From positions 124,001-188,000 of IMG/VR virus record IMGVR_UViG_3300036781_000418: a DNA stretch of 64,000 nucleotides. One strand, written 5' to 3'. Below the pieces are notes generated by a model that saw nothing but the letters and a program-made list of their open reading frames with translations, was not told the origin of the DNA and searched no databases. This document shows, one piece after another, positions 3,975 through 14,769 of the stretch. Positions within the stretch are counted from its first letter, which is position 1; each line of letters begins with the position of its first letter. A program made the position numbers and the translations under genes.

Positions 3975-5714
3975 ATGTCAATGTTTACTGGCTACTGGCA
4001 GATTCTTACGCCGAAGACGCGTAAGGACTTCTACACCACGTTGTCCACCGACGCCTACGACCCTCGTGCAACCGACGGTTCGTCCCTCTCCGCCGTCAGC
4101 TGGTACGCCAGCGTTATGCGTGGCCCAAATACCCGCATGTCGCAGTACAAGCAGTTCGACGCGATGGACGCCGACATCGACATCGCCCGCTCGTTGGACA
4201 TCATCTCCGAGGAGATGACCAACATGGACGACAAGACGAACCTACCGTTCATCATCGACTGGCAGAAGGAGGACAACCAAGACGTGTCCGACTCCGCCGT
4301 CGTGACCGTTCGTGCCGCCCTGCGGCAGTGGACGCAGCTCCAGCAGCTGACACGCCGCAACTTCCAAATTGCACGGAAGATGGTGCTGTACGGAGACTGC
4401 TTCTTCAAGAAGTCGTCTGACACTCGGCGCTGGGAATACGTCGACCCTATCAACGTCGTCGGGATTGAGGTTGACCAGTACGGCAACAAGATCTCGTACC
4501 ACATCAAGCAGCCAACGGCGAACGCTCAGGCGGGCGTGACACGTGGTGACCAAGTCTTCATCGTGCCGGCCGCCGCCATGATTCACTTCTCGATGTCCGA
4601 CGAAATGGGCGACTCCGCTCCGTTCGGTCAGTCGATTCTGCGCCCAATCTACCGCGTCTACCGTCAGCTCTCGATGCTGGAAGACGCGGTGATCATCTAC
4701 CGTATCGTCCGAGCCCCCGAACGTCGTGTGTTCTACCTTGACGTGGGCAACATGAACGCCCAGCAGACGAAGCGCTACATGGAGACCGTCAAGGCCGAGC
4801 AGCGCCAGAAGCGTATTCCAGGCGTCAGCTCGAACAACGCGTCCGACGTTGTCGACGGTGCCTACGATCCACAGTCCATCTCACAGGACCTGTTTTTCCC
4901 CGTTACGGCCGGCGGCCGCTCCTCACGCGTTGAGGTGCTGCCAGGCGGTACTGAGGACTTTGGCACGACCCTGCTGAAGAAGTTTGAAGAGAAGATCTTC
5001 CGCGGTCTGCGTATTCCAACGTCCTACATGGGCGCTTCCACCACCGGTGGTACGGACCCACAAACGAACGACGGTAAGGTCGGTATCGCGTACATCGAGG
5101 AGCTCCGCTTCTGCAAGTTCATTCAGCGTCTCCAGATGCGCATGAATCAAATCTACGACGAAGAGTTCAAGGTCTACATGAAGGTCTGCGGCCTGCAGAT
5201 CGACGATGAAGTCTTCCAGATTCGACTGCCTGAGCCAGCCAACTTTGCCCTGTACCGCCAGGCCGCCCTTGACGCCGACCTTGTGTCGTCCTTCAAGAAC
5301 ATCGAGGACACCGACCTGCTGTCACGTCGTCTGCTTCTCAAGCGCTACCTTGGCCTGACCGACGACGAGATCCAGATGAACGAAGTTCTCCGCAAGGAAG
5401 AGCAAGGTATCGAGGACACGCCAGACTACACGGCGATCCAACAGCTGTACGACCCAGCCATCTACAAGAACCGTGATCCAATCAAGATCAAGAAGGCCAG
5501 TGAGCCTGAACCTGGTGATGAGGGTACCGGTCAAGAGCTTGGTGGCGACATCGGCATCGGCGGCGAGACCGGCGGATTTGGTGGAGGCGAGCAGCCAGGT
5601 GGTGAAGGTAGTGAGGAGGCCGACCTCCTGACACCTGAACCAGAAGAGACCGGTGGCGCTGAGCCAGCCGCTCCGGCCGCCCCAGCAGGTGGTGAAACTG
5701 AACAACCCGCGTAA
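3975..5714 (+). CDS. Portal protein, T4 gp20-like
   Basis: Motifs MLEDAVIIYRIVRAPERRVFYLDVGNM, QDLFFP, RSSRVEVLPGG and ELRFCKFIQRLQ. Has an acidic, Gly-rich C-terminal tail. Confidence 0.95.
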   Translation: MSMFTGYWQILTPKTRKDFYTTLSTDAYDPRATDGSSLSAVSWYASVMRGPNTRMSQYKQFDAMDADIDIARSLDIISEEMTNMDDKTNLPFIIDWQKEDNQDVSDSAVVTVRAALRQWTQLQQLTRRNFQIARKMVLYGDCFFKKSSDTRRWEYVDPINVVGIEVDQYGNKISYHIKQPTANAQAGVTRGDQVFIVPAAAMIHFSMSDEMGDSAPFGQSILRPIYRVYRQLSMLEDAVIIYRIVRAPERRVFYLDVGNMNAQQTKRYMETVKAEQRQKRIPGVSSNNASDVVDGAYDPQSISQDLFFPVTAGGRSSRVEVLPGGTEDFGTTLLKKFEEKIFRGLRIPTSYMGASTTGGTDPQTNDGKVGIAYIEELRFCKFIQRLQMRMNQIYDEEFKVYMKVCGLQIDDEVFQIRLPEPANFALYRQAALDADLVSSFKNIEDTDLLSRRLLLKRYLGLTDDEIQMNEVLRKEEQGIEDTPDYTAIQQLYDPAIYKNRDPIKIKKASEPEPGDEGTGQELGGDIGIGGETGGFGGGEQPGGEGSEEADLLTPEPEETGGAEPAAPAAPAGGETEQPA

Positions 5715-5742: not shown

Positions 5743-6354
5743 ATGCAACAGATCCTAAAAGAATACCTCGCCCCTCAGGTGGCCAACCTCACCGAGATGA
5801 AGCAACACAATGGGGACACGTACCTCAGCGGCATCTTGATGCAGTCGGAGGTTATCAACGGCAACGGTCGTAAGTACCGTCGCGGCGAGCTTTCATCGGT
5901 CGTCGAAGAATGCTTTAAGAAGCTGAAGTCCGGCATGTACATCATGGGTGAACTGAACCACCCAGATACGCTGTCCATCGACCTGAACAACGTCTCCCAT
6001 GCCATCACCGAGATGCGCATGGACGGCAACAACGTCGTCGGTCGTATGAAGCTGCTCGGCACCCCGAAGGGTCAGATCGCCAAGGCCATCATGGAAGGTG
6101 GCGTCCGGTTGGGCGTCTCCTCACGTGGTACAGGCTCAGTCAATGAATCTGGTGAAGTGTCTGGCTTTAACTTCGTGACGATGGACATTGTGTCCGTGCC
6201 GTCCGCCAAGGACGCCCTACCTGACCTCGTCTACGAGTCACTAAACTCCAAGAAGATCGTCACGCTGGCCGAGTCCGTGGTGCACGATGAGAAGGCTCAA
6301 GCCCACCTGTTCAAGGCGGTGTCCGCACTGATCCAATCGATCACCAAGAAGTAA
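5743..6354 (+). CDS. Prohead core protease, T4 gp21-like
   Basis: NGNGRKY, GELNHP (catalytic His), GVSSRG (catalytic Ser) and DIVSVPS. TAAATA box at 5712-5717. Confidence 0.95.
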   Translation: MQQILKEYLAPQVANLTEMKQHNGDTYLSGILMQSEVINGNGRKYRRGELSSVVEECFKKLKSGMYIMGELNHPDTLSIDLNNVSHAITEMRMDGNNVVGRMKLLGTPKGQIAKAIMEGGVRLGVSSRGTGSVNESGEVSGFNFVTMDIVSVPSAKDALPDLVYESLNSKKIVTLAESVVHDEKAQAHLFKAVSALIQSITKK

Positions 6355-6633: not shown

Positions 6634-6737
6634 GTGTGCTCGCTAAATATCACATGGCGATATTCGACCAAGGTTGAAGAAGCCGGCACAAATACCCGGG
6701 GTCTACGTTAGTGGACCTCACGTTTAAGGAGAAAGCA

Positions 6738-7637
6738 ATGGACGAAATTCTGCAGAAGCTGCTTGAGTCCGAGCTACTCAGTGAAGACACCCGCGCGCTC
6801 ATCAAAGAGCAGTGGACGACCCACGTTGAAGCTTACAAGGCGCAAGTCGCCGAGGAAACTTCCACCAAGGTCCGCCTGGAACTGACCGCTCAACTTACTG
6901 AACAGTTCACGCAAGAGCGTGACGAACTGGTCACGCAAGTCGACTCCCTCATCACTGAAGTTCTTACCAAGGAACTGAAGGAACTGAAGGACGACATCGA
7001 GTACTACCGCGATCTCGAAGCCACCTACGCTGAACGCCTCGTTGAAGAAAAGACTCGTCTCGCTCATGAAGTGCAGACGGAACTTGATCAGCTCGTCGAT
7101 CATCTGGATTCCTTCCTCGACCAAGTCCTCGCCGAAGAGTTCGAAGAACTCAAGGAAGACATTGAAGTCGTGAAGGCCAACCAGTTCGGCAAGAAAATCT
7201 TCGAAGCCTTCGCTGACACGTTCGCCAAGGCGCACGTAGATGAAAAGAGCGCAACCACCAAGCTGACCGTTTCGGAAGGTAAGGTAGTTGACCTGGAAAA
7301 GCGTCTTTCCGAAGCTGAGGAAAGCCGCAACCAACTGGTCCGTGAAGCCAAGCTTGAGAAGGTGCTCGCACCGCTGCAAGGCAAGAAGCGTGAACAGATG
7401 GCGATGCTCCTCAAGTCAATCGACACCGAGAAACTTGACGAGAGCTACAACTTCTTCATTGGCCGCATCATCAAGGGCGACTCGCAAGAGCAGCTTACTG
7501 AAGGTAAGGCTGATGATCGCAAGACCACTGTCGTGACAGGTGACAACACTGGACGCGTGGTTGATAAGACGCCAGCCCAACTGCAACTGGATGAAGAAAT
7601 GAAGAGCTTCTTCCGTGCCGCTGGCATTAAAAACTAA
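6738..7637 (+). CDS. Prohead scaffold protein, T4 gp22-like
   Basis: Acidic coiled coil with KIFEAF motif, directly upstream of the major capsid gene. Many L-x-E sites. TAAATA at 6644-6649. Confidence 0.85.
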   Translation: MDEILQKLLESELLSEDTRALIKEQWTTHVEAYKAQVAEETSTKVRLELTAQLTEQFTQERDELVTQVDSLITEVLTKELKELKDDIEYYRDLEATYAERLVEEKTRLAHEVQTELDQLVDHLDSFLDQVLAEEFEELKEDIEVVKANQFGKKIFEAFADTFAKAHVDEKSATTKLTVSEGKVVDLEKRLSEAEESRNQLVREAKLEKVLAPLQGKKREQMAMLLKSIDTEKLDESYNFFIGRIIKGDSQEQLTEGKADDRKTTVVTGDNTGRVVDKTPAQLQLDEEMKSFFRAAGIKN

Positions 7638-7660
7638 CCCGTCCTCTCTAGGAGAAACAA

Positions 7661-8947
7661 ATGCATCAACTACTCAAGGAACAAGCCACCTGGGAACAAG
7701 CCTCCGGTAAGCTGCTTGAAGGCGTCCCAGCCGACAAGGTCAAGCTGACCAAGGCCCTGATGGAACAGCAACGCGCTGCCATCCTGAAGGAAACCGCCGG
7801 TGGCACTGGCACGATCGCTTCGGCAATCGACAACTTCCAAAAGATCACGATTCCGATGATCCGTCGTATCGTTCCTGGAACGATCTCGACCGACCTCGTC
7901 GGCATGCAGCCAATGTCCGGTCCAGTCGGCCTGGTCTACTCGCTGCGCTTCGCGTTCTCGGAAGCTGTTGACACCAACGGCGCCACGATCAACGACATCA
8001 CCGCTGGTGACGAAGTCTTCGCGAACAACTCGAAGATGAAGCGCTTCTACTCAACCGCAAACGTCGGCACGACTGGTTACCCACCAGCTCTGACCGCCAC
8101 CACCTCGACCGGTGTGTCCGCAGCTACTGCTGACTACGAAGGTTTCGGCGGTCGCGCGCTGCGTCTGCAGGTCCTGAAGCAAACCATCACCGCTGGCTCG
8201 CGTAAGCTGCAAGCACGTTGGACCGTTGAAGCCGCTCAGGACATCACGTCCCAGCACGGCCTCGATCTCGAAAACGAACTGACCGCCGCTCTGGCCGCTC
8301 AGATCGCTCACGAAATCGACAACGAAATTCTGACTGACCTTTTGGGTCTGGCTGGTTCCGTCGGTACGTACGACTTCGCTGCTCAACCAGCGAACCTCAC
8401 CCCGAACTACCTTGGCGACTCGTACGCCAACCTCGGTGTTCTGATCAACAAGCTCGCCGGTGAAATCGGTGCTAAGACCCGTCGTGGCCCAGGCAACTGG
8501 CTCGTTGGTTCTTACCTGATCACCTCCTTGCTGCAGTCTGCTGCGAAGTCCGTGTTCGCTCCTGCGATCGCTGGTTCCTTCGACATGCCAGTCGGCAACA
8601 AGATGGTTGGTACGCTGAACGGTCAGATGAAGGTCTACTCGTACAACTGGGGTCTGAACGACGCCTGGACGATCGCTGACTCCGCCGACAACGCCACTGG
8701 CGCGACCGGTGAAGACATCCTGATCGGTTACAAGGGTGGTGCATCGGAGCTTGACTCCGGTTACTTCTACTGCCCATACGTGCCGCTGATGTCCTCTGGT
8801 GTGATCACTGATCCTAACACCTTCAACCCAGCTGTTTCGCTGATGACTCGATACGGTAAGGCCACGTTCACGAACGCTGGTACTTCCCTCGGGAACTCGG
8901 CTGACTACTACGCACGTATCCGCGTGCTGAACGTCGCCTTCAGCTGA
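7661..8947 (+). CDS. Major capsid protein, T4 gp23-like
   Basis: IPMIRR, VGMQPMSGPVGLVYSLR, SRKLQARWTVEAAQD, EIDNEI, GYFYCPYVPL and LMTRYG. Confidence 0.97.
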   Translation: MHQLLKEQATWEQASGKLLEGVPADKVKLTKALMEQQRAAILKETAGGTGTIASAIDNFQKITIPMIRRIVPGTISTDLVGMQPMSGPVGLVYSLRFAFSEAVDTNGATINDITAGDEVFANNSKMKRFYSTANVGTTGYPPALTATTSTGVSAATADYEGFGGRALRLQVLKQTITAGSRKLQARWTVEAAQDITSQHGLDLENELTAALAAQIAHEIDNEILTDLLGLAGSVGTYDFAAQPANLTPNYLGDSYANLGVLINKLAGEIGAKTRRGPGNWLVGSYLITSLLQSAAKSVFAPAIAGSFDMPVGNKMVGTLNGQMKVYSYNWGLNDAWTIADSADNATGATGEDILIGYKGGASELDSGYFYCPYVPLMSSGVITDPNTFNPAVSLMTRYGKATFTNAGTSLGNSADYYARIRVLNVAFS

Positions 8948-8949
8948 TC

Positions 8950-8970
8950 GAAGCGGCTTCGGCCGCTCTT
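8950..8970 (+). terminator. Hairpin terminator after the capsid gene
   Basis: agcggc-TTCG-gccgct followed by a short T run. Confidence 0.6.
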
Positions 8971-9038
8971 GATAAGTGTTCAAAATGGAACCCACAATGT
9001 GGGTTCCATTTGTGGCATCTGCACCGTACAATTGCTAC

Positions 9039-9236
9039 ATGAGCCTCTACATTGAACACCTCACCACCGCCGATCACCTTATGGCCGCCGGACTGGGGTG
9101 CGTGGTTGTAACAACCCTGTATGCTGGCTTGGCGGTGGTCCTCAACTACTACCATCGAGTTACCGACTTGATCTTCCTGCTGATTGGCGTGGTGGGTTGC
9201 CTCATTATGGTCTACGCCCTCTTTGCCATGATCTAA
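9039..9236 (+). CDS. Small two-TM membrane protein
   Basis: Two hydrophobic segments. Preceded by TTCCAT-N17-TACAAT (9004-9032). Confidence 0.55.
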   Translation: MSLYIEHLTTADHLMAAGLGCVVVTTLYAGLAVVLNYYHRVTDLIFLLIGVVGCLIMVYALFAMI

Positions 9237-9237
9237 T

Positions 9238-9801
9238 ATGACCACCAAAACTAAACCAGCTGACAAGCTGCGGCTTGTGATCTCGCTTCGAAACGAAGCT
9301 CATGATCAGCCGCCAGTTCGACTTGGCTTCATCAACGACTATCGACCTGACCTGGCTGGCTGGGCCGCTAAGCAACACACCCAAGACAACTGGGCGTACG
9401 GCGAAGCGTACGCCCGCAAAGGCGACCCTCCGCGCTACGGATACCATGAAGATGGCAGGGTGTATTCCCTTCGCTGGAAGCGCAGTGAGGTCAACACCTG
9501 GCTGAACGACGTAGATGACGATGGTAAACTTATTCCAATCATTGAAGAGGTTCCAGCCGACCTCCAGCCGACCATCATTAAAAACGTTCCAATGAACGGC
9601 TTCCGCTTGGTCAAAACAGTTACACGTTACAGCACCTCCAACAAGGTCTGGCGCGTTCAAGATCCACGTGGCTTCCAACTTGAGATCAGTTCGGCCAACC
9701 TTGAGACGCTGATCCACAGCACCATCATCTTAGGCGGCCTGATCGACGGCTACTGCGTCTGGAACGGCAAGGTCCTCCAGATCGTGCCCACCCCCACCTA
9801 A
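9238..9801 (+). CDS. Hypothetical phage protein
   Basis: 187 aa with a globular C-terminus (VWRVQDPRGFQLEISSANL) and phage-like codon usage. Confidence 0.6.
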   Translation: MTTKTKPADKLRLVISLRNEAHDQPPVRLGFINDYRPDLAGWAAKQHTQDNWAYGEAYARKGDPPRYGYHEDGRVYSLRWKRSEVNTWLNDVDDDGKLIPIIEEVPADLQPTIIKNVPMNGFRLVKTVTRYSTSNKVWRVQDPRGFQLEISSANLETLIHSTIILGGLIDGYCVWNGKVLQIVPTPT

Positions 9802-9822
9802 CCTTACCACCGTTCAACCTGT

Positions 9823-9848
9823 CAGGCACCCAATGGGTGCCTGTTTTG
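9823..9848 (+). terminator. Rho-independent terminator
   Basis: caggcaccc-aat-gggtgcctg followed by TTTTG. Confidence 0.75.
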
Positions 9849-9887
9849 CGTTCGGAATCGTAAATAGCACTCCAACTAGAGAGTCCC

Positions 9888-10628
9888 ATGAAGCTTCAAC
9901 AGCTACACGAAAGCGGCAAGTACTCCGAGATCATCAACGGAGTAATCACGCCCGCCACCAACTTTAGCAACGACTCCTACTGTTTGAAGAGCACAGGTGC
10001 CAAGAAGCTAGCGGTCTACGCCGAGCTCACCACCCTTGGAAATATTTTCAACGGCATCTCAGCGGCCAGGGACGTGATCCTGTCAAGCCTGACGGCGCTC
10101 ACCTCCATCAAGGGCCTGCCTGACAACGTCGAAACCCTGCGCCTTGAGGCGCTGCCAAACATTAGGAGCCTTGAAGGCTGTCCGTCAACGCTCCGAACCT
10201 TCTCATCTCAGCGATGCGGCCTTACCTCGCTGAAGGGCCTACCACGCACGTTGGCCGGCAGCCTCTATCTATCGCACAACCACGAGCTCTCCGATCTAAC
10301 TGGCATGCCCAGTGAGGTTGGCTACAGCATCAGCATCACGGGTGGAGCCACCATTGATTTGACTGGCATCCACAAGAAGCTCAAAAGTATGGGCTCAGGC
10401 TCAAAGAACACCAGCATCTTTAAGTGCGATTCGTTTAAGGGTGGCGTCCTTGGACTGTTGATGATTGAGGATCTAGGTAAAGTTGACCTGGGCAGCGCCA
10501 ACTTCGAACAGTTGAACGCCATCATCAACAAACACCTGCATGAGGACGCCAAGGTGTCAACTGACCGCATGCTGACATGCCAAGAAGAGCTGATTGACGC
10601 CGGTTACGACGAGTACGCAAAGCTATGA
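9888..10628 (+). CDS. LRR-like repeat protein, probable internal head protein
   Basis: Repeats LTSIKGLP / IRSLEGCP / LTSLKGLP / LSDLTGMP. N-terminus MKLQQLHE. TAAATA at 9861-9866. Confidence 0.7.
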   Translation: MKLQQLHESGKYSEIINGVITPATNFSNDSYCLKSTGAKKLAVYAELTTLGNIFNGISAARDVILSSLTALTSIKGLPDNVETLRLEALPNIRSLEGCPSTLRTFSSQRCGLTSLKGLPRTLAGSLYLSHNHELSDLTGMPSEVGYSISITGGATIDLTGIHKKLKSMGSGSKNTSIFKCDSFKGGVLGLLMIEDLGKVDLGSANFEQLNAIINKHLHEDAKVSTDRMLTCQEELIDAGYDEYAKL

Positions 10629-11356
10629 AGATCAAACAACTACACGAAGTCAAGGTTCCAGAAGGCGCGTCCTTCTCCATGGACAAGCACAGCATCATGA
10701 CCATCCATACACTGGATGAGCACGGCCACGTGCTGCCCGACGTCGCCGCCTTCAAGTTCAAGGTGGCCGGTATCATCGCCCAGAACATCGGCTTGACCTC
10801 CCTCGAGGGTCTACCGAAGGTTATCAAGGGCAGCCTGGTGGTCAGCAAGAACAAGCTGACCACGATGGTGGGTGGGCCTACTGAGGTTCACGGCGTCATG
10901 GATGTGAACAGCAACGAACTGACCTCGATTGAAGGCGTTCCACGTAAGCTGACCAAGTTAGCCGCCAGCGACAACCGTATCAAGTCGTTGCACAACATTC
11001 ATAAACACATTGATGAGTTCATTCCACCATCAAAGACCGCCGCCGGCTACAACAGTGGCTACTATGGAACTGTGGCTGCTGGGGGTCTTGAATTTAGTGA
11101 CAATCCTCTAACCGAAGCGGCCCTTGGTATTTTGAAGATCAAAGGGTTTGACACGATTGTCTTTGTGAGTGAGTCAAGTGGCCCTATGTACGCCGCGATG
11201 GTACTTGTCAATCGCGCCATTAGCGACAATGTCCGTAAGAACGCAGACGGCCATGGCGACAACCTTGGTTGGTCCTGCCCGGTTACGAACGCCCAGCTTC
11301 TTGAAATGCAGGAGCTGTGGATGGATTTGGGTCTAGAGGACCTAGCCCAGCTGTGA
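10625..11356 (+). CDS. LRR-like repeat protein, paralog of 9888..10628
   Basis: LTSLEGLP / LTSIEGVP / IKSLHNI repeats, N-terminus MKIKQLHE, and a similar C-terminal helix (QELWMDLGLEDLAQL). Confidence 0.7.
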   Translation: MKIKQLHEVKVPEGASFSMDKHSIMTIHTLDEHGHVLPDVAAFKFKVAGIIAQNIGLTSLEGLPKVIKGSLVVSKNKLTTMVGGPTEVHGVMDVNSNELTSIEGVPRKLTKLAASDNRIKSLHNIHKHIDEFIPPSKTAAGYNSGYYGTVAAGGLEFSDNPLTEAALGILKIKGFDTIVFVSESSGPMYAAMVLVNRAISDNVRKNADGHGDNLGWSCPVTNAQLLEMQELWMDLGLEDLAQL

Positions 11357-11398
11357 TTCCTCTAAATACGTAGATTATCTCCATCAGGGACACCATAC

Positions 11399-12277
11399 AT
11401 GAGCACGATCTTGGAGCTTCTACAGCTCACTGAAGCAAAGAACCACATGGGCGAGAAGACCTACGCTTCATGGGATTCTTGGAAGAAGGCCATCCGTAAG
11501 GCCTATCCAGAAGTTTGGTTCGACGGCGACAAGGACATTGCTAACGCGATGATCGGCGCAAAGCCATACAAGCAAGGAAGCACCCATCAAGTGGGTGAGT
11601 GGGACGGCAACGAAGGCTGCATCCACAACCTGTCTGAAGGCAAAAAGGACAAGAAAAATCCAGCTGACATGAGCCCAACCAAGCTCTACAACTACGTATT
11701 GGATGTGATGATTGGCGACGACGATGAAGAAGGTCAGGAACGTTTCATCAATGCCTTGCGTGGCAACAGTGGCGGTACAAAACGAGCCCGTGAAGACGCA
11801 AAACAAGACATGCTTCGGTACATTGAACGCGAAGGCCTAACTGAAGGCAAGTCCAAGATCATGGACAAGATTTATCCAAAGACTAAGGGTCCAGCTGAGA
11901 AGTCAGGCCGGCACATGAAGGCTGGTTACTACGTCTTCGACGAAGACGGCGTGCCAGTGCATGGACCGTTTGACACGGACCGCAAGGCGGAGCGTGAAGC
12001 GGCCCATCTGAACGCTGGTAAGAACCGCGGCTTCTACATGGACTACCTCGAAGCTGGTGATGAAGTTTCTGAAGGTCAGCTTGTCGAGGACGAAGGCATC
12101 GATAAGATCGATGCTTGGAAGGCCGCTGTAAAGAAGGCCCACCCAGACGTCGCCGCCAAGTTGAAGTTTAAGGCCAACGTGGAAGACGACACCCTTGAAG
12201 CCTGCATCTCTGGCCAGGACCGCCTCTACGGTGTGTTCGACCTTGATAAGGAACGCGGCCAAGTACTTGGCAACTAA
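11399..12277 (+). CDS. Modular polyprotein-like probable internal head protein
   Basis: Modules of about 62-76 aa separated by LTE|A, LSE|G, LTE|G and VSE|GQLVE|. First and last modules are homologous. TAAATA at 11363-11368. Confidence 0.6.
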   Translation: MSTILELLQLTEAKNHMGEKTYASWDSWKKAIRKAYPEVWFDGDKDIANAMIGAKPYKQGSTHQVGEWDGNEGCIHNLSEGKKDKKNPADMSPTKLYNYVLDVMIGDDDEEGQERFINALRGNSGGTKRAREDAKQDMLRYIEREGLTEGKSKIMDKIYPKTKGPAEKSGRHMKAGYYVFDEDGVPVHGPFDTDRKAEREAAHLNAGKNRGFYMDYLEAGDEVSEGQLVEDEGIDKIDAWKAAVKKAHPDVAAKLKFKANVEDDTLEACISGQDRLYGVFDLDKERGQVLGN

Positions 12278-12286
12278 GGAACCACC

Positions 12287-12571
12287 ATGGCAAGCATCAC
12301 TCCAAACGTTACCCTCTACACCCAGCACATCACTGAGGCCGGCCAATGCCGCTCCGTGTTGACGGCGCTCAAGGCACTGGTCGACGGTGGTACGTTCCGT
12401 CAAAACTTGATCAGCCTCAACTCCATTGAAGCCAACCTCACCAACCTACCGTATCCAGACGAACTAGTTGGTCGCGTCAACGCGCTGAGCGTGGCGATTC
12501 AGGAACTTGAGACGACCCTTGGCATCATTGAAAACGGCATCCGCGGAGCCTTGCTCTACCCACGTCAATGA
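12287..12571 (+). CDS. Hypothetical protein
   Basis: 94 aa with an RBS, in the late cluster. Has ITE|A near the N-terminus. Confidence 0.6.
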   Translation: MASITPNVTLYTQHITEAGQCRSVLTALKALVDGGTFRQNLISLNSIEANLTNLPYPDELVGRVNALSVAIQELETTLGIIENGIRGALLYPRQ

Positions 12572-13272
12572 AGCTGATCGACCTACGCAAGGTGCGCCTC
12601 ATCACGAAGACCAGCGTGGCCGCCGCCAAGCAGCCACGCATTGACCTGCCAATCTTCGGTATCAGCATTGGAACTGAGCAGTCAACGGGCGACACCTCAC
12701 GAGTCAACGAAGCGGCGGAGTATTCCGACCATGATGAGTACATCATGCAGCTGTGGAAGAAGCACAAGCTAAAGCCTATCGCTGAAGGTCAGTACGCCAA
12801 CGTGTACCAACATCCAACGCACGCAAACGTCGTTGTGAAGATCAGCCACAATGACGTGCCTTACATCAAGTACCTTAAGTGGGCCGAGAAGCAGCATGGC
12901 AACCCCTACCTGCCGCACGTGTTGAGTCTCCATGAGTACAAAGACGAAGCCTTCGAAAAAGGCGAGGTGTTTCACATCGTCTTCATGGAGAAGCTTTACC
13001 CACCGTCCAAGAAGGACGTGAAGAACTTCCTGCTCCACTCTGGTCTCTATGAGATCGGCATTGACGCTGAAGAGTTTGGCAACGTCACCGATGAGGATCT
13101 TGAGGAGGCTATGAAGTCCGACTCAATTGACCCAAAGCTTAAGTCTATTCTTACTTACATCAGGCGTTCACCGTACGCTTTCGATATCCATGATCAGAAC
13201 TTCATGGTCCGCAAAGGCGGTCAACTTGTTCTGACCGATCCAACCTCACATATCGGGCACGTCCCAAAATGA
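12568..13272 (+). CDS. Protein-kinase-like (Ser/Thr/Tyr kinase fold) protein
   Basis: IAEGQYANVY (Gly-rich loop), VVVKIS (ATP Lys), VFMEKL (hinge), DIHDQNFM (catalytic loop) and LVLTDP (DFG equivalent). Confidence 0.8.
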   Translation: MKLIDLRKVRLITKTSVAAAKQPRIDLPIFGISIGTEQSTGDTSRVNEAAEYSDHDEYIMQLWKKHKLKPIAEGQYANVYQHPTHANVVVKISHNDVPYIKYLKWAEKQHGNPYLPHVLSLHEYKDEAFEKGEVFHIVFMEKLYPPSKKDVKNFLLHSGLYEIGIDAEEFGNVTDEDLEEAMKSDSIDPKLKSILTYIRRSPYAFDIHDQNFMVRKGGQLVLTDPTSHIGHVPK

Positions 13273-13601
13273 AACACTCCTTCAAATCCTACCTAGCAGA
13301 GGCCGAGGTCAACGCGGCGGTTGAAAAGCCAAAGGCGCCTGACGCTTCATCACCTGACGCGAACGCGATGAAGATCGCGGCTGAGTTCCTTGACACGACG
13401 CCTGAACACCTTGAAATTATTGACAAGGGAACTGAAGCGAAGGTGCTCGACACTGGTCGTGAAATCGCCAAGAAGTTCATCAAGATGGCTACTGGCTCTT
13501 GGGTCATTCGCCAGTTCAAGGCGCTAGGCAAGATGTTCGCCCGCGTTGAAGCACCAAACGGCAACGCCCGCACATACCAGTCGGACGTCGCGACGGAGTA
13601 A
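13269..13601 (+). CDS. Probable internal head protein with T4-type capsid-targeting N-terminus
   Basis: Starts MKHSFKSYLAE|AE, resembling the T4 internal-protein targeting peptide (MKTYQEFIAE type). Confidence 0.6.
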   Translation: MKHSFKSYLAEAEVNAAVEKPKAPDASSPDANAMKIAAEFLDTTPEHLEIIDKGTEAKVLDTGREIAKKFIKMATGSWVIRQFKALGKMFARVEAPNGNARTYQSDVATE

Positions 13602-13605
13602 GTAA

Positions 13606-14769
13606 GTGCCCACCACCGCCATCAAGCACCTGGCCAAGAAGACCCACCACTCGATCGATCGCGTCGAGCACCTGTGGAAGAAGGCCAAGGACATTGTCAC
13701 CAAGGAGTATGGAGCCGACCACCAAGGCTACTATGCGCTGGTGATGGGCATCACGAAGAAGATGCTTGGGCTTAGCGAGCGACTGTCGTTCGGCGACTAC
13801 CTGGTGTTGAAGGAAGTGGACACTGGTAAGTCAGTGCTCTATCAATCCATCGTGAAGCTGTTGAACGCTGGTAAAGAGGTGCGAGTGCGGATCAACCGAG
13901 TTGGAGCTGATACAAGTTCACTCAAGATGTTCTTCGACGGTAGTCTATGGACTTCTCGGGCCCTAGGCTCAAGTGACGATATTATTCGCTTCAACGGCAC
14001 CTGTGAAGTTGGTGCTGGTGCGCCGAGGCTCCTCAGCGCTTCTACAGCTCTAGAACAACATCTCAAACATGACGATGCTGACGACGACTACACCATCAAG
14101 AAGGACAGTTGGGCCGGCGGCTACTTGGTGACCAACATTGACAAGGTCGATGAAGCTGAAGACGTGTCCGTCCTTTGGCTCGCGATCATGAAGCTGACCG
14201 ACGCTGGGCATCATATTGAAGTCAACTTCGACAACTACAATCGAGCTGGCACCTTCTCAACTTATCAAGGCATTCTGCGCAGCTCACGCCACACCACTAC
14301 ACCTGAGTTTTTTGGAGTGTACATTGACCCACAGCGCGATAAGCATCAGCTGAACTACTCCTATAACCTCACTGAGTTCTTCAAGCCTGAAGACGCAGAC
14401 GACATCTTTAAGTTGGAGAAGCATGGTGATACGTACCGCATCTCAAAGATGAAGAAGGTTGACGAGTCAGCTACCAACACCGTGTTGTTCACGCTTATCC
14501 ATAAGTTGCTGGATGCTGGACACCATGTGAAGGCTGACTTTACCTCGGGGAACACAGCTGACTGGCCGTTCCCCGACAATTCGAAGCGCTATCAAGGCGC
14601 ACTTAAGGTGGTTGGCAACCACATCGCCCTGTACGGCACCATTACCACCGGATCGAAGCTGCCTGATACTACCTCTGGTCGCGTTGTCAGCGCTATCAAC
14701 GCTGAAAACGCCGACGAACACTTCAACCTCGAGAAAGACGGTACAGACTATGTACTACGAAACGCCTGA
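13606..14769 (+). CDS. Tandem-module polyprotein-like protein
   Basis: GTG start. A 58-aa leader domain is followed by three homologous 100-113 aa modules separated by LKE| and two KVDE| sites. Confidence 0.7.
   Translation: MPTTAIKHLAKKTHHSIDRVEHLWKKAKDIVTKEYGADHQGYYALVMGITKKMLGLSERLSFGDYLVLKEVDTGKSVLYQSIVKLLNAGKEVRVRINRVGADTSSLKMFFDGSLWTSRALGSSDDIIRFNGTCEVGAGAPRLLSASTALEQHLKHDDADDDYTIKKDSWAGGYLVTNIDKVDEAEDVSVLWLAIMKLTDAGHHIEVNFDNYNRAGTFSTYQGILRSSRHTTTPEFFGVYIDPQRDKHQLNYSYNLTEFFKPEDADDIFKLEKHGDTYRISKMKKVDESATNTVLFTLIHKLLDAGHHVKADFTSGNTADWPFPDNSKRYQGALKVVGNHIALYGTITTGSKLPDTTSGRVVSAINAENADEHFNLEKDGTDYVLRNA

Follow-up and report, generated by a model that had tools for sequence, protein, structure and literature searches.

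Proteins that are loaded inside the head of a phage and injected are the earliest phage factors that host defences encounter, and few of them are known outside T4, P1, phiKZ and SPN3US. In T4, the internal proteins IPI, IPII, IPIII and Alt carry a short leader ending in hydrophobic-x-Glu, the capsid targeting sequence (CTS) MKTYQEFIAE (PMC8442874), in which positions 4 and 7 matter in targeting and positions 8 and 10 in processing; mature IPI has a mass of ~8 kDa (PMC9026906). The expected specificity of the head protease is cleavage after Glu at hydrophobic-x-E (PMC5694885, PMC9026906). With Asp in place of this Glu, the T4 CTS is not processed. Here, we describe an open reading frame (ORF) at positions 11399-12277 of a 64,000-nt stretch of DNA, referred to as the window (positions 124,001 to 188,000 of IMG/VR virus record IMGVR_UViG_3300036781_000418), from a jumbo phage of a soil metagenome represented by a single 342,591-bp contig. 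Its product of 292 amino acids (aa) is best read as a polyprotein version of a T4-type internal head protein, a reading to which we give a probability of about 0.62.

The sequence-only reading that preceded this analysis had proposed four modules of roughly 70 aa in this ORF, with junctions of the (L/V)-(S/T)-E/G type (the slash marks the candidate cut), and the coordinates, sites and module lengths that it gave were all exact. In the protein, a 12-aa leader precedes three modules of 68, 69 and 76 aa, after which come the GQLVE spacer and a final module of 62 aa; its candidate cut sites are LTE10-12/A, LSE78-80/G, LTE147-149/G, VSE223-225/G and LVE228-230/D. The features of the gene are as follows, in window coordinates:

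11363-11368, plus strand: TAAATA hexamer of the T4 late-promoter type, 30 nt from the ATG of the ORF
11386-11390, plus strand: AGGGA, a Shine-Dalgarno (SD)-like element 8 nt upstream of the ATG
11399-12277, plus strand: four-module ORF, an open frame with a 292-aa product (P0001)
11399-11434, plus strand: leader MSTILELLQLTE (aa 1-12), candidate capsid targeting sequence with the LTE/A cut site at its end
11435-11638, plus strand: module 1 (aa 13-80), a small alpha/beta domain that is widespread and has an LSE/G end
11639-11845, plus strand: module 2 (aa 81-149), an orphan helical module with an LTE/G end, inserted relative to the closest homologs
11846-12073, plus strand: module 3 (aa 150-225), an N-terminal arm and the core GYYVFDEDGVPVHGPFDTDRKAEREAAHL, with a VSE/G end
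12074-12088, plus strand: spacer GQLVE (aa 226-230), flanked by two candidate cut sites
12089-12277, plus strand: module 4 (aa 231-292) and stop codon, a diverged homolog of module 1

Three described systems resemble this arrangement in part. As in the T4 internal proteins, a short leader ends in hydrophobic-x-Glu (MKTYQEFIAE in T4, MSTILELLQLTE here, MKLLKELLxLxE in the family), variable cargo lies behind a conserved leader, the mature sizes are small (~8-20 kDa in T4, 6.9-8.4 kDa for the four mini-proteins predicted here), and the phage encodes a gp21-type S77 protease, a gp22-like scaffold and a gp23-like capsid protein. The mature part shows no similarity to IPI, IPII, IPIII or Alt in Pfam and PHROG searches (E <= 0.01) or in tblastn against 50,697 phage records. 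For the head and ejection proteins of phiKZ, 201phi2-1 and SPN3US, an S77-related protease likewise cuts after Glu at a three-residue motif, several sites per substrate are possible, and propeptides are believed to direct proteins into the prohead; in these phages, however, the motif is A/S/G-x-E, the propeptides exceed 100 aa, and multiple cuts fall inside discarded propeptides, not between retained modules (PMC5694885). Polyvalent proteins, which their authors liken to viral polyproteins (Iyer, Burroughs, Anand, de Souza, Aravind 2017, PMC5512222), also combine several unrelated domains in one polypeptide, are thought to be codelivered with DNA, and are extensively shuffled. Their hallmark of 2-15 distinct domains in variable architectures is shared by the present family, with four modules in the 292-aa protein and relatives of 71-1420 aa that vary in module order and number, and none of their effector or peptidase domains (MPTase, ART, ArdC-N, PBECR) is found by Pfam in the 292-aa protein or in 8 large relatives. 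Whereas polyvalent proteins are large, with recognisable enzymatic or DNA-binding domains and embedded peptidases thought to release them (PMC5512222), the modules here are tiny and hold no embedded peptidase, and release would be by a trans-acting prohead protease at a short linear motif. A literature search, incomplete in coverage, found no CTS-led polyprotein with protease sites between retained folded modules.

The cut motif is far more frequent in this protein than its composition predicts. In its strict form, [LIVM][ST]E[AG], it occurs 4 times against 0.065 expected, a count reached by none of 20,000 shuffles (0/20,000). When all ORFs of the phage are ranked by this motif, using an approximate proteome of 427 ORFs and 104,259 residues with 35 occurrences in total, ORF 11399-12277 comes first (Poisson P 3.6e-6) and the scaffold protein second, with 3 sites. 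The LTE/GK site that had been noticed around position 7498 in the scaffold gene lies at 7494-7505.

The modules also occur separately, in proteins of very different layout. An exhaustive HMMER search (E <= 0.001, representatives being clusters at 50% identity) matched 304 representative proteins of 71-1420 residues, nearly all via residues 10-80 (module 1) or 230-292 (module 4). Among the 150 homologs listed of the 304, module 1 has 128 copies, 53 of them N-terminal, 54 internal and 21 C-terminal, and homologs of 71-100 residues consist of a leader and module 1 or module 4 and nothing else. Module 4 has 36 copies in other proteins, stand-alone forms of 71-75 aa included. Its homology to module 1, suspected by eye, was borne out by profile-profile comparison (hhalign probability 95.9%, E 5.3e-9), and W28, G66 and G73 are invariant in 117 copies of the two types. 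The core of module 3 (G-W/Y-Y-V-x-D...G-P-F-x-T/S...E-A) recurs in 14 other proteins, some with two copies. Modules 1, 3 and 4 retain 40-65% identity across very diverse phages, and modules 1 and 4 are carried by one gene only in this genome. Thus, the shuffling anticipated from the sequence is present in the homologs, where modules 1, 3 and 4 stand at varied positions, in varied combinations, and alone. A stand-alone relative of module 3 is encoded by the same phage, and a TAAATA of its own precedes the gene, 21 nt separating hexamer and start codon:

G:257490-257918 (whole-record coordinates, outside the window), plus strand: 142-aa protein, leader MKLSTISELIAINE/A followed by the core GWYVIDP...GPYRTREEAKEY

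Module 2 (81-149) is the exception, with no homolog by phmmer or profile iteration or by region-restricted search. Word-indexed searches restricted to module 3 (150-229) or module 2 (81-149) returned the query alone, and local profile iteration recovered further copies of module 3 and none of module 2. The closest homologs have the modules 1-3-4 (P0002) and 1-3-4 plus an extra C-terminal module (P0008); since module 2 is absent from both, it is by sequence comparison an insertion bounded by two candidate cut sites. In P0008, module 4 is followed by GQLDE, which is comparable to the GQLVE spacer. An assembly chimera, considered as the origin of the module order, is made unlikely by the 1-3-4 order common to P0002 and P0008, whose sequences are from different source collections.

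The motif marks the edges of modules throughout the family, irrespective of what lies next to them. In the 107 module 1 copies with upstream sequence, whose sequence surroundings are unrelated, P1 is E in 81% and P3 is V, L, I or M in 79%, P2 is variable, and the first residue of the module is A, G or S in 76% (63, 13 and 5 copies, respectively); a pattern of conserved P1 and P3 around a variable P2 agrees with T4, in which processing depends on positions 8 and 10 of the CTS (PMC9026906). Immediately upstream of the domain, [LIVM]xE is present in 48 of the 65 copies that are internal or C-terminal, the background being 2.5% per position. Beyond the core, in the C-terminal direction, a site follows within 12 residues in 65% of module 1 copies and in 25% of random windows, with a peak at 5-6 residues; 26 of 32 non-terminal module 4 copies end in VLxE, and module 3 copies are usually preceded by xxE/AK. 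Over the whole family, [LIVM]xE[AGS] is enriched 2.7-fold (z 23.5; reversed motif, z 3.5), and the spacing of consecutive sites has a sharp peak at 60-80 residues, into which 128 of 446 intervals fall against ~9.5 expected. Moreover, the mature N-terminus (A/S-K-N-H-M-G-E) would be identical for a stand-alone leader plus module 1 and for an internal copy after cleavage at the joint, a point on which much of the polyprotein argument rests.

The DNA at the four strict joints has a common core, (A/T)CTGAAG(G/C), the sequences being ACTGAAGCAAAG (11426-11437), TCTGAAGGCAAA (11630-11641), ACTGAAGGCAAG (11837-11848) and TCTGAAGGTCAG (12065-12076). This core may reflect only codon choice for S/T-E-G/A, or may serve as microhomology for module recombination.

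Structure prediction agrees for the most part with a string of separate domains. The full-length protein was modelled with AlphaFold2 from an 88-row alignment of full-length relatives and module 1 fragments that is deep only for module 1, the fold of modules 2-4 resting on an alignment of <=3 sequences. Putting the fragments of every module type into one MAFFT alignment was rejected because it piled modules 3 and 4 onto module 1, and the full-length fold was run without module 3 and module 4 fragments. The model has four confident, separate domains (mean pLDDT 83.8, pTM 0.40), and no single compact fold spanning the joints, which would have spoken against a polyprotein, is seen. Stretches below pLDDT 50 are confined to residues 80-85, 162-168 and 223-232, that is, joint 1, a loop of the N-terminal arm of module 3, and joint 3. 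Modules 1 and 4 (pLDDT 96-98 and 94-97) are each predicted as one helix packed on an antiparallel sheet, the core of module 3 (87-97) as a small beta-beta-alpha-beta unit, and module 2 as helical (helices 93-105, 110-121 and 128-144, pLDDT 75-84). The expectation of independent domains with disordered junctions thus held for the domains and for joints 1 and 3, which are of low confidence, and failed for joint 2, which sits between helices. In a separate model of module 1 (pLDDT 86, pTM 0.74), the upstream LTE precedes the first core strand and lies in an N-terminal stretch of low confidence (the first ten residues average pLDDT 59); its place outside the folded core argues that its conservation is not structural. 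Neither a Foldseek search of the full model against PDB, BFVD and AFDB clusters nor a comparison of the module 1 model with AFDB clusters nor an ESM Atlas search gave an informative fold, function or match, and the best VIA-align hit of module 1 among 48,161 PDB chains (Z 4.0) was below the noise level of the tool. The top BFVD entry, which carries no name, is 498 aa long and thus equals EST35_0203 of Pseudomonas phage PA5oct in length. By sequence, Pfam and PHROGs (E <= 0.01) contain no family for the 292-aa protein, tblastn with it against the 50,697 phage records gave no match, and Pfam revealed no partner domains in the 8 large relatives (926-1420 aa), only sub-threshold zinc-ribbon matches.

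The leader and the signals in front of the gene are of T4 type. The features by which a T4 CTS is recognised, namely a propeptide of 10-19 residues, an (L/I)-x-E end and hydrophobic targeting positions, are all present in MSTILELLQLTE/A, which AlphaFold renders as a short helix at 3-9 and an extended segment at 10-12, and the N-terminal consensus across the module family is M-K/S-L-L-K/Q-E-L-L-x-L-x-E. The TAAATA hexamer, which the sequence-only reading had taken for the gene's own late promoter, is indeed in place at 11363-11368 and is in excess genome-wide, with 111 copies against 6-40 for each other permutation of the same six letters; 53% of the copies are upstream of an SD-like element and a start codon, mostly 21-32 nt away. 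This is the behaviour of a T4 late-type promoter element. Late timing of TAAATA is inferred from analogy with T4 and from its presence before the protease gene.

The gene belongs to a head block. By its predicted genes, the genome is that of a jumbo phage with T4-style head assembly, and the portal, protease, scaffold and capsid genes are located just upstream of ORF 11399-12277, which starts 2.4 kb downstream of the capsid gene:

3975-5714, plus strand: portal protein, T4 gp20 type (Pfam PF07230, E 6.8e-76)
5743-6354, plus strand: prohead serine protease (Peptidase_S77, T4 gp21 type), which presumably does the processing (PF03420, E 3.2e-25; PHROG 207, E 5.4e-52)
6711-7637, plus strand: scaffold/core protein (PHROG 237 head scaffolding, weak; PHROG 10922), with three strict sites
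7661-8947, plus strand: major capsid protein, gp23 type (PF07068, E 1.6e-85, domain from residue 56)

A TAAATA of its own also precedes the protease gene, 25 nt separating the hexamer from the start codon. CTS-like N-termini are found in both the protease (MQQILKE/) and the capsid protein (MHQLLKE/), and the N-terminal propeptide of the latter holds four sites, LKE/, LLE/G, LME/ and LKE/T, after residues 7, 20, 35 and 44, of which LKE42-44/TAGG is the likely maturation site given that the Pfam gp23 domain starts at residue 56. By capsid protein, the closest isolates are two jumbo phages, Ralstonia RsoM2USA (52%) and Xanthomonas XacN1 (45%); downstream of the capsid gene of RsoM2USA, no equivalent gene is present. 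Metagenomic homologs of the modules are located on contigs of T4-like phages with genes for gp15, sheath, terminase, gp32 and UvsX, and are not always adjacent to head genes.

A link to the virion comes from isolated phages. When family members other than the 292-aa protein were used as tblastn queries, PA5oct-like Pseudomonas jumbo phages and Tunturi_5 were found. EST35_0203 of Pseudomonas phage PA5oct (QCG76084.1, 498 aa) matches the module 1 HMM with E 1.1e-15 and is annotated in GenBank as 'structural protein, ESI-MS/MS', and it is surrounded by other structural proteins detected by mass spectrometry (MS); 93 virion-associated proteins of PA5oct have been identified by MS (PMC7318152). As here, module 1 is part of a multi-segment protein with many hydrophobic-x-E sites, and the phage encodes an S77 protease; the leader is of another type (MFNINDILRLAGVQAVKE) and the partner modules are different. 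In Tunturiibacter phage Tunturi_5, module 1 is carried by gp350 (1080 aa), annotated as 'DarB-like antirestriction protein'.

In the PA5oct record (MK797984.1, 5731-7227 and 10350-11840), EST35_0203 also contains an internal repeat, with two segments ending ...LPYAVIKRIHDKVMGE/T and ...MPVQRLRAIHKSLMDE/G, and a similar segment closes EST35_0206 (...LPDDVINRIYSKIAK at the stop). By its sequence, this repeat segment is another site-terminated module in virion proteins detected by MS.

The following mechanism is proposed. Transcription would probably be late, from the gene's own TAAATA promoter, and the leader MSTILELLQLTE would act like the T4 CTS and attach the precursor to the scaffold core while the prohead assembles. 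The S77 prohead protease would then cut after Glu at [L/V]-x-E, both after residue 12, with removal of the leader, and after residues 80, 149, 225 and 230. Four mini-proteins of 6.9-8.4 kDa, each folded on its own and similar in size to mature T4 IPI, would thereby be released; they would remain with the DNA inside the capsid and probably pass into the host during infection. With its own cut site, each module could be gained, lost, duplicated or transferred between genes without altering the mature product, and modules delimited by sites would explain why the same ones occur alone or reordered in related phages. The ground on which the mechanism is built is established, comprising the anatomy of the protein, the motif statistics, the shuffling of modules, their independence as domains in the model, the T4-type head machinery, and the virion association of one homolog; what we infer for this protein is that the leader targets it, that each site is cut, and that the products remain in the capsid and are ejected. 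Its capsid-cargo part is supported by context, namely the T4-type head module with an S77 protease, the CTS-like leader, the late-type promoter, and the PA5oct homolog.

Several points weigh against a polyprotein of this kind. T4 internal proteins are cut once and deliver one cargo per gene (PMC8442874), in contrast to four cargos and four further candidate sites here, and they are highly basic, whereas the 292-aa protein is acidic (pI 5.35; single modules 4.8-7.0). Joint 2 (LTE149/G150) is not disordered in the model but lies in a 3-residue break between helices 128-144 and 148-158. Two more [LIVM]xE matches, MGE17-19 and VGE65-67, occur inside folded module 1 and must be assumed to be protected, and the hydrophobic-x-E upstream of this module could be part of the domain, not a cut site. 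In PA5oct gp203, the residues upstream of module 1 are LDEE/K, a loose fit to the cut rule. Genome-wide, TAAATA genes and CTS-like N-termini are only weakly linked (odds ratio 2.3, p 0.03, in a crude test). Finally, both the cargo role and the cleavage are assigned from the sequence of a metagenome assembly.

In one alternative, only the leader is removed, as for T4 IPI-III, so that the mature product would be one 280-residue protein of four domains and the [L/V]-x-E sequences at the joints would be unused linkers or domain edges. The single cut of the T4 proteins (PMC8442874), the absence of a disordered linker at joint 2 and the chance that the hydrophobic-x-E ahead of module 1 is a conserved domain edge all fit it. 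It does not sit well with a motif that bounds three unrelated module types, is seen at both ends of modules, and is enriched family-wide and in one direction; P3-P1 fall in low-confidence, non-core residues of the models, and the stand-alone forms show that single modules are functional units. We consider removal of the leader alone unlikely.

The same cleavage could also serve a different end, with the protein an auxiliary component of the core or scaffold, similar to T4 gp67, gp68 or gp22, that is chopped and mostly expelled before DNA packaging, its modules being filler or assembly factors. The strict cut motif is shared with the scaffold, the gene lies within the head block, core proteins of T4 receive several cuts (PMC9026906), and the protein is acidic as a whole, with a module 2 that is both acidic and helical. 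Yet scaffolds of the gp22/gp67/gp68 type are helical and poorly conserved, whereas only module 2 is helical here and modules 1, 3 and 4 are compact alpha/beta units with invariant Trp and Gly residues and 40-65% identity; module copy number and position vary freely among phages, the confinement of modules 1 and 4 to one gene of this genome suggests an accessory rather than an assembly role, and the PA5oct homolog is found in mature virions. A core component is in our view quite improbable.

A cytoplasmic multi-domain protein outside the virion, its leader likeness and joint motifs being coincidental or for some other purpose, would be in keeping with a protein known from sequence alone that has no Pfam or PHROG family and no informative structural match, and with homolog genes that are not always beside head genes, but is very hard to reconcile with the motif statistics, which argue against coincidence, the leader consensus common to the family, the late-type promoter, the location 2.4 kb downstream of the capsid gene, and the MS detection of the PA5oct homolog in virions.

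Under the polyprotein reading, an anti-defence or host take-over role of the modules, by analogy with T4 IPI and Alt, would be a guess. The DNA-condensing role proposed for T4 internal proteins is unlikely because the modules are not basic (pI 4.8-7.0). A wider proposal, which we put forward tentatively as possible rather than probable, is that T4-like and jumbo phages use prohead-protease sites as universal joints by which ejected mini-proteins are assembled, swapped and multiplied, in the manner of exon shuffling, so that the at least 304 clusters of proteins with 7-8 kDa modules would be injected anti-defence or take-over effectors delivered in fixed ratios through one targeting peptide. 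If the polyprotein reading is right, the range of T4 CTS packaging, already used to load foreign proteins, would widen to a natural case in which one precursor delivers several products at fixed ratios, and the diversification of head cargo would also be explained. The sequence grammar of such genes, in which a late promoter and an MKLLxELLxLxE-type leader come before folded modules of ~60-80 aa separated by hydrophobic-x-E/A or G, would then reveal a large hidden class of cargo in metagenomes. Given that PA5oct is culturable and its virion proteomics exists, the prediction is directly testable.

Between the capsid gene and the four-module ORF, and shortly after the latter, the window holds further genes of interest:

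9888-10628 and 10625-11356, plus strand: two adjacent paralogous ORFs of 246 and 243 aa, with CTS-like leaders MKLQQLHE/S and MKIKQLHE/V
12568-13272, plus strand: ORF two genes downstream, 234 aa (PHROG 15752, E 3.5e-13, T7 gp0.7-type protein kinase, inhibitor of host transcription)

The paralogs are candidates for additional capsid-targeted proteins. The first of them, 9888-10628, has its own TAAATA, and both show a repeated LTSLEGLP-type pattern that resembles leucine-rich repeats by eye, without confirmation by Pfam (LRR_4, E 0.8); the family that they match, PHROG 21719, carries no functional annotation. For the ORF at 12568-13272, Pfam gives weak atypical-kinase hints only (ABC1, E 0.066).

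Apart from the protease, the capsid protein and these paralogs, about ten other TAAATA-driven ORFs have similar N-termini, and over the whole genome ~15 TAAATA-driven ORFs have leaders of the MK(L/T)xx(L)xE type, examples in whole-record coordinates being G:118820, 213512, 219300, 257490, 269493, 272364, 272868 and 337865, which suggests a larger set of capsid-targeted proteins dispersed over the genome. At the locus of the metagenomic homolog P0007 (L001), large ORFs without a Pfam domain are located on both sides of the gene (6904-9951, 1015 aa; 11361-14183, 940 aa), and a 163-aa ORF at 14180-14671 contains a module 3-like core; this locus may hold several string-type proteins.

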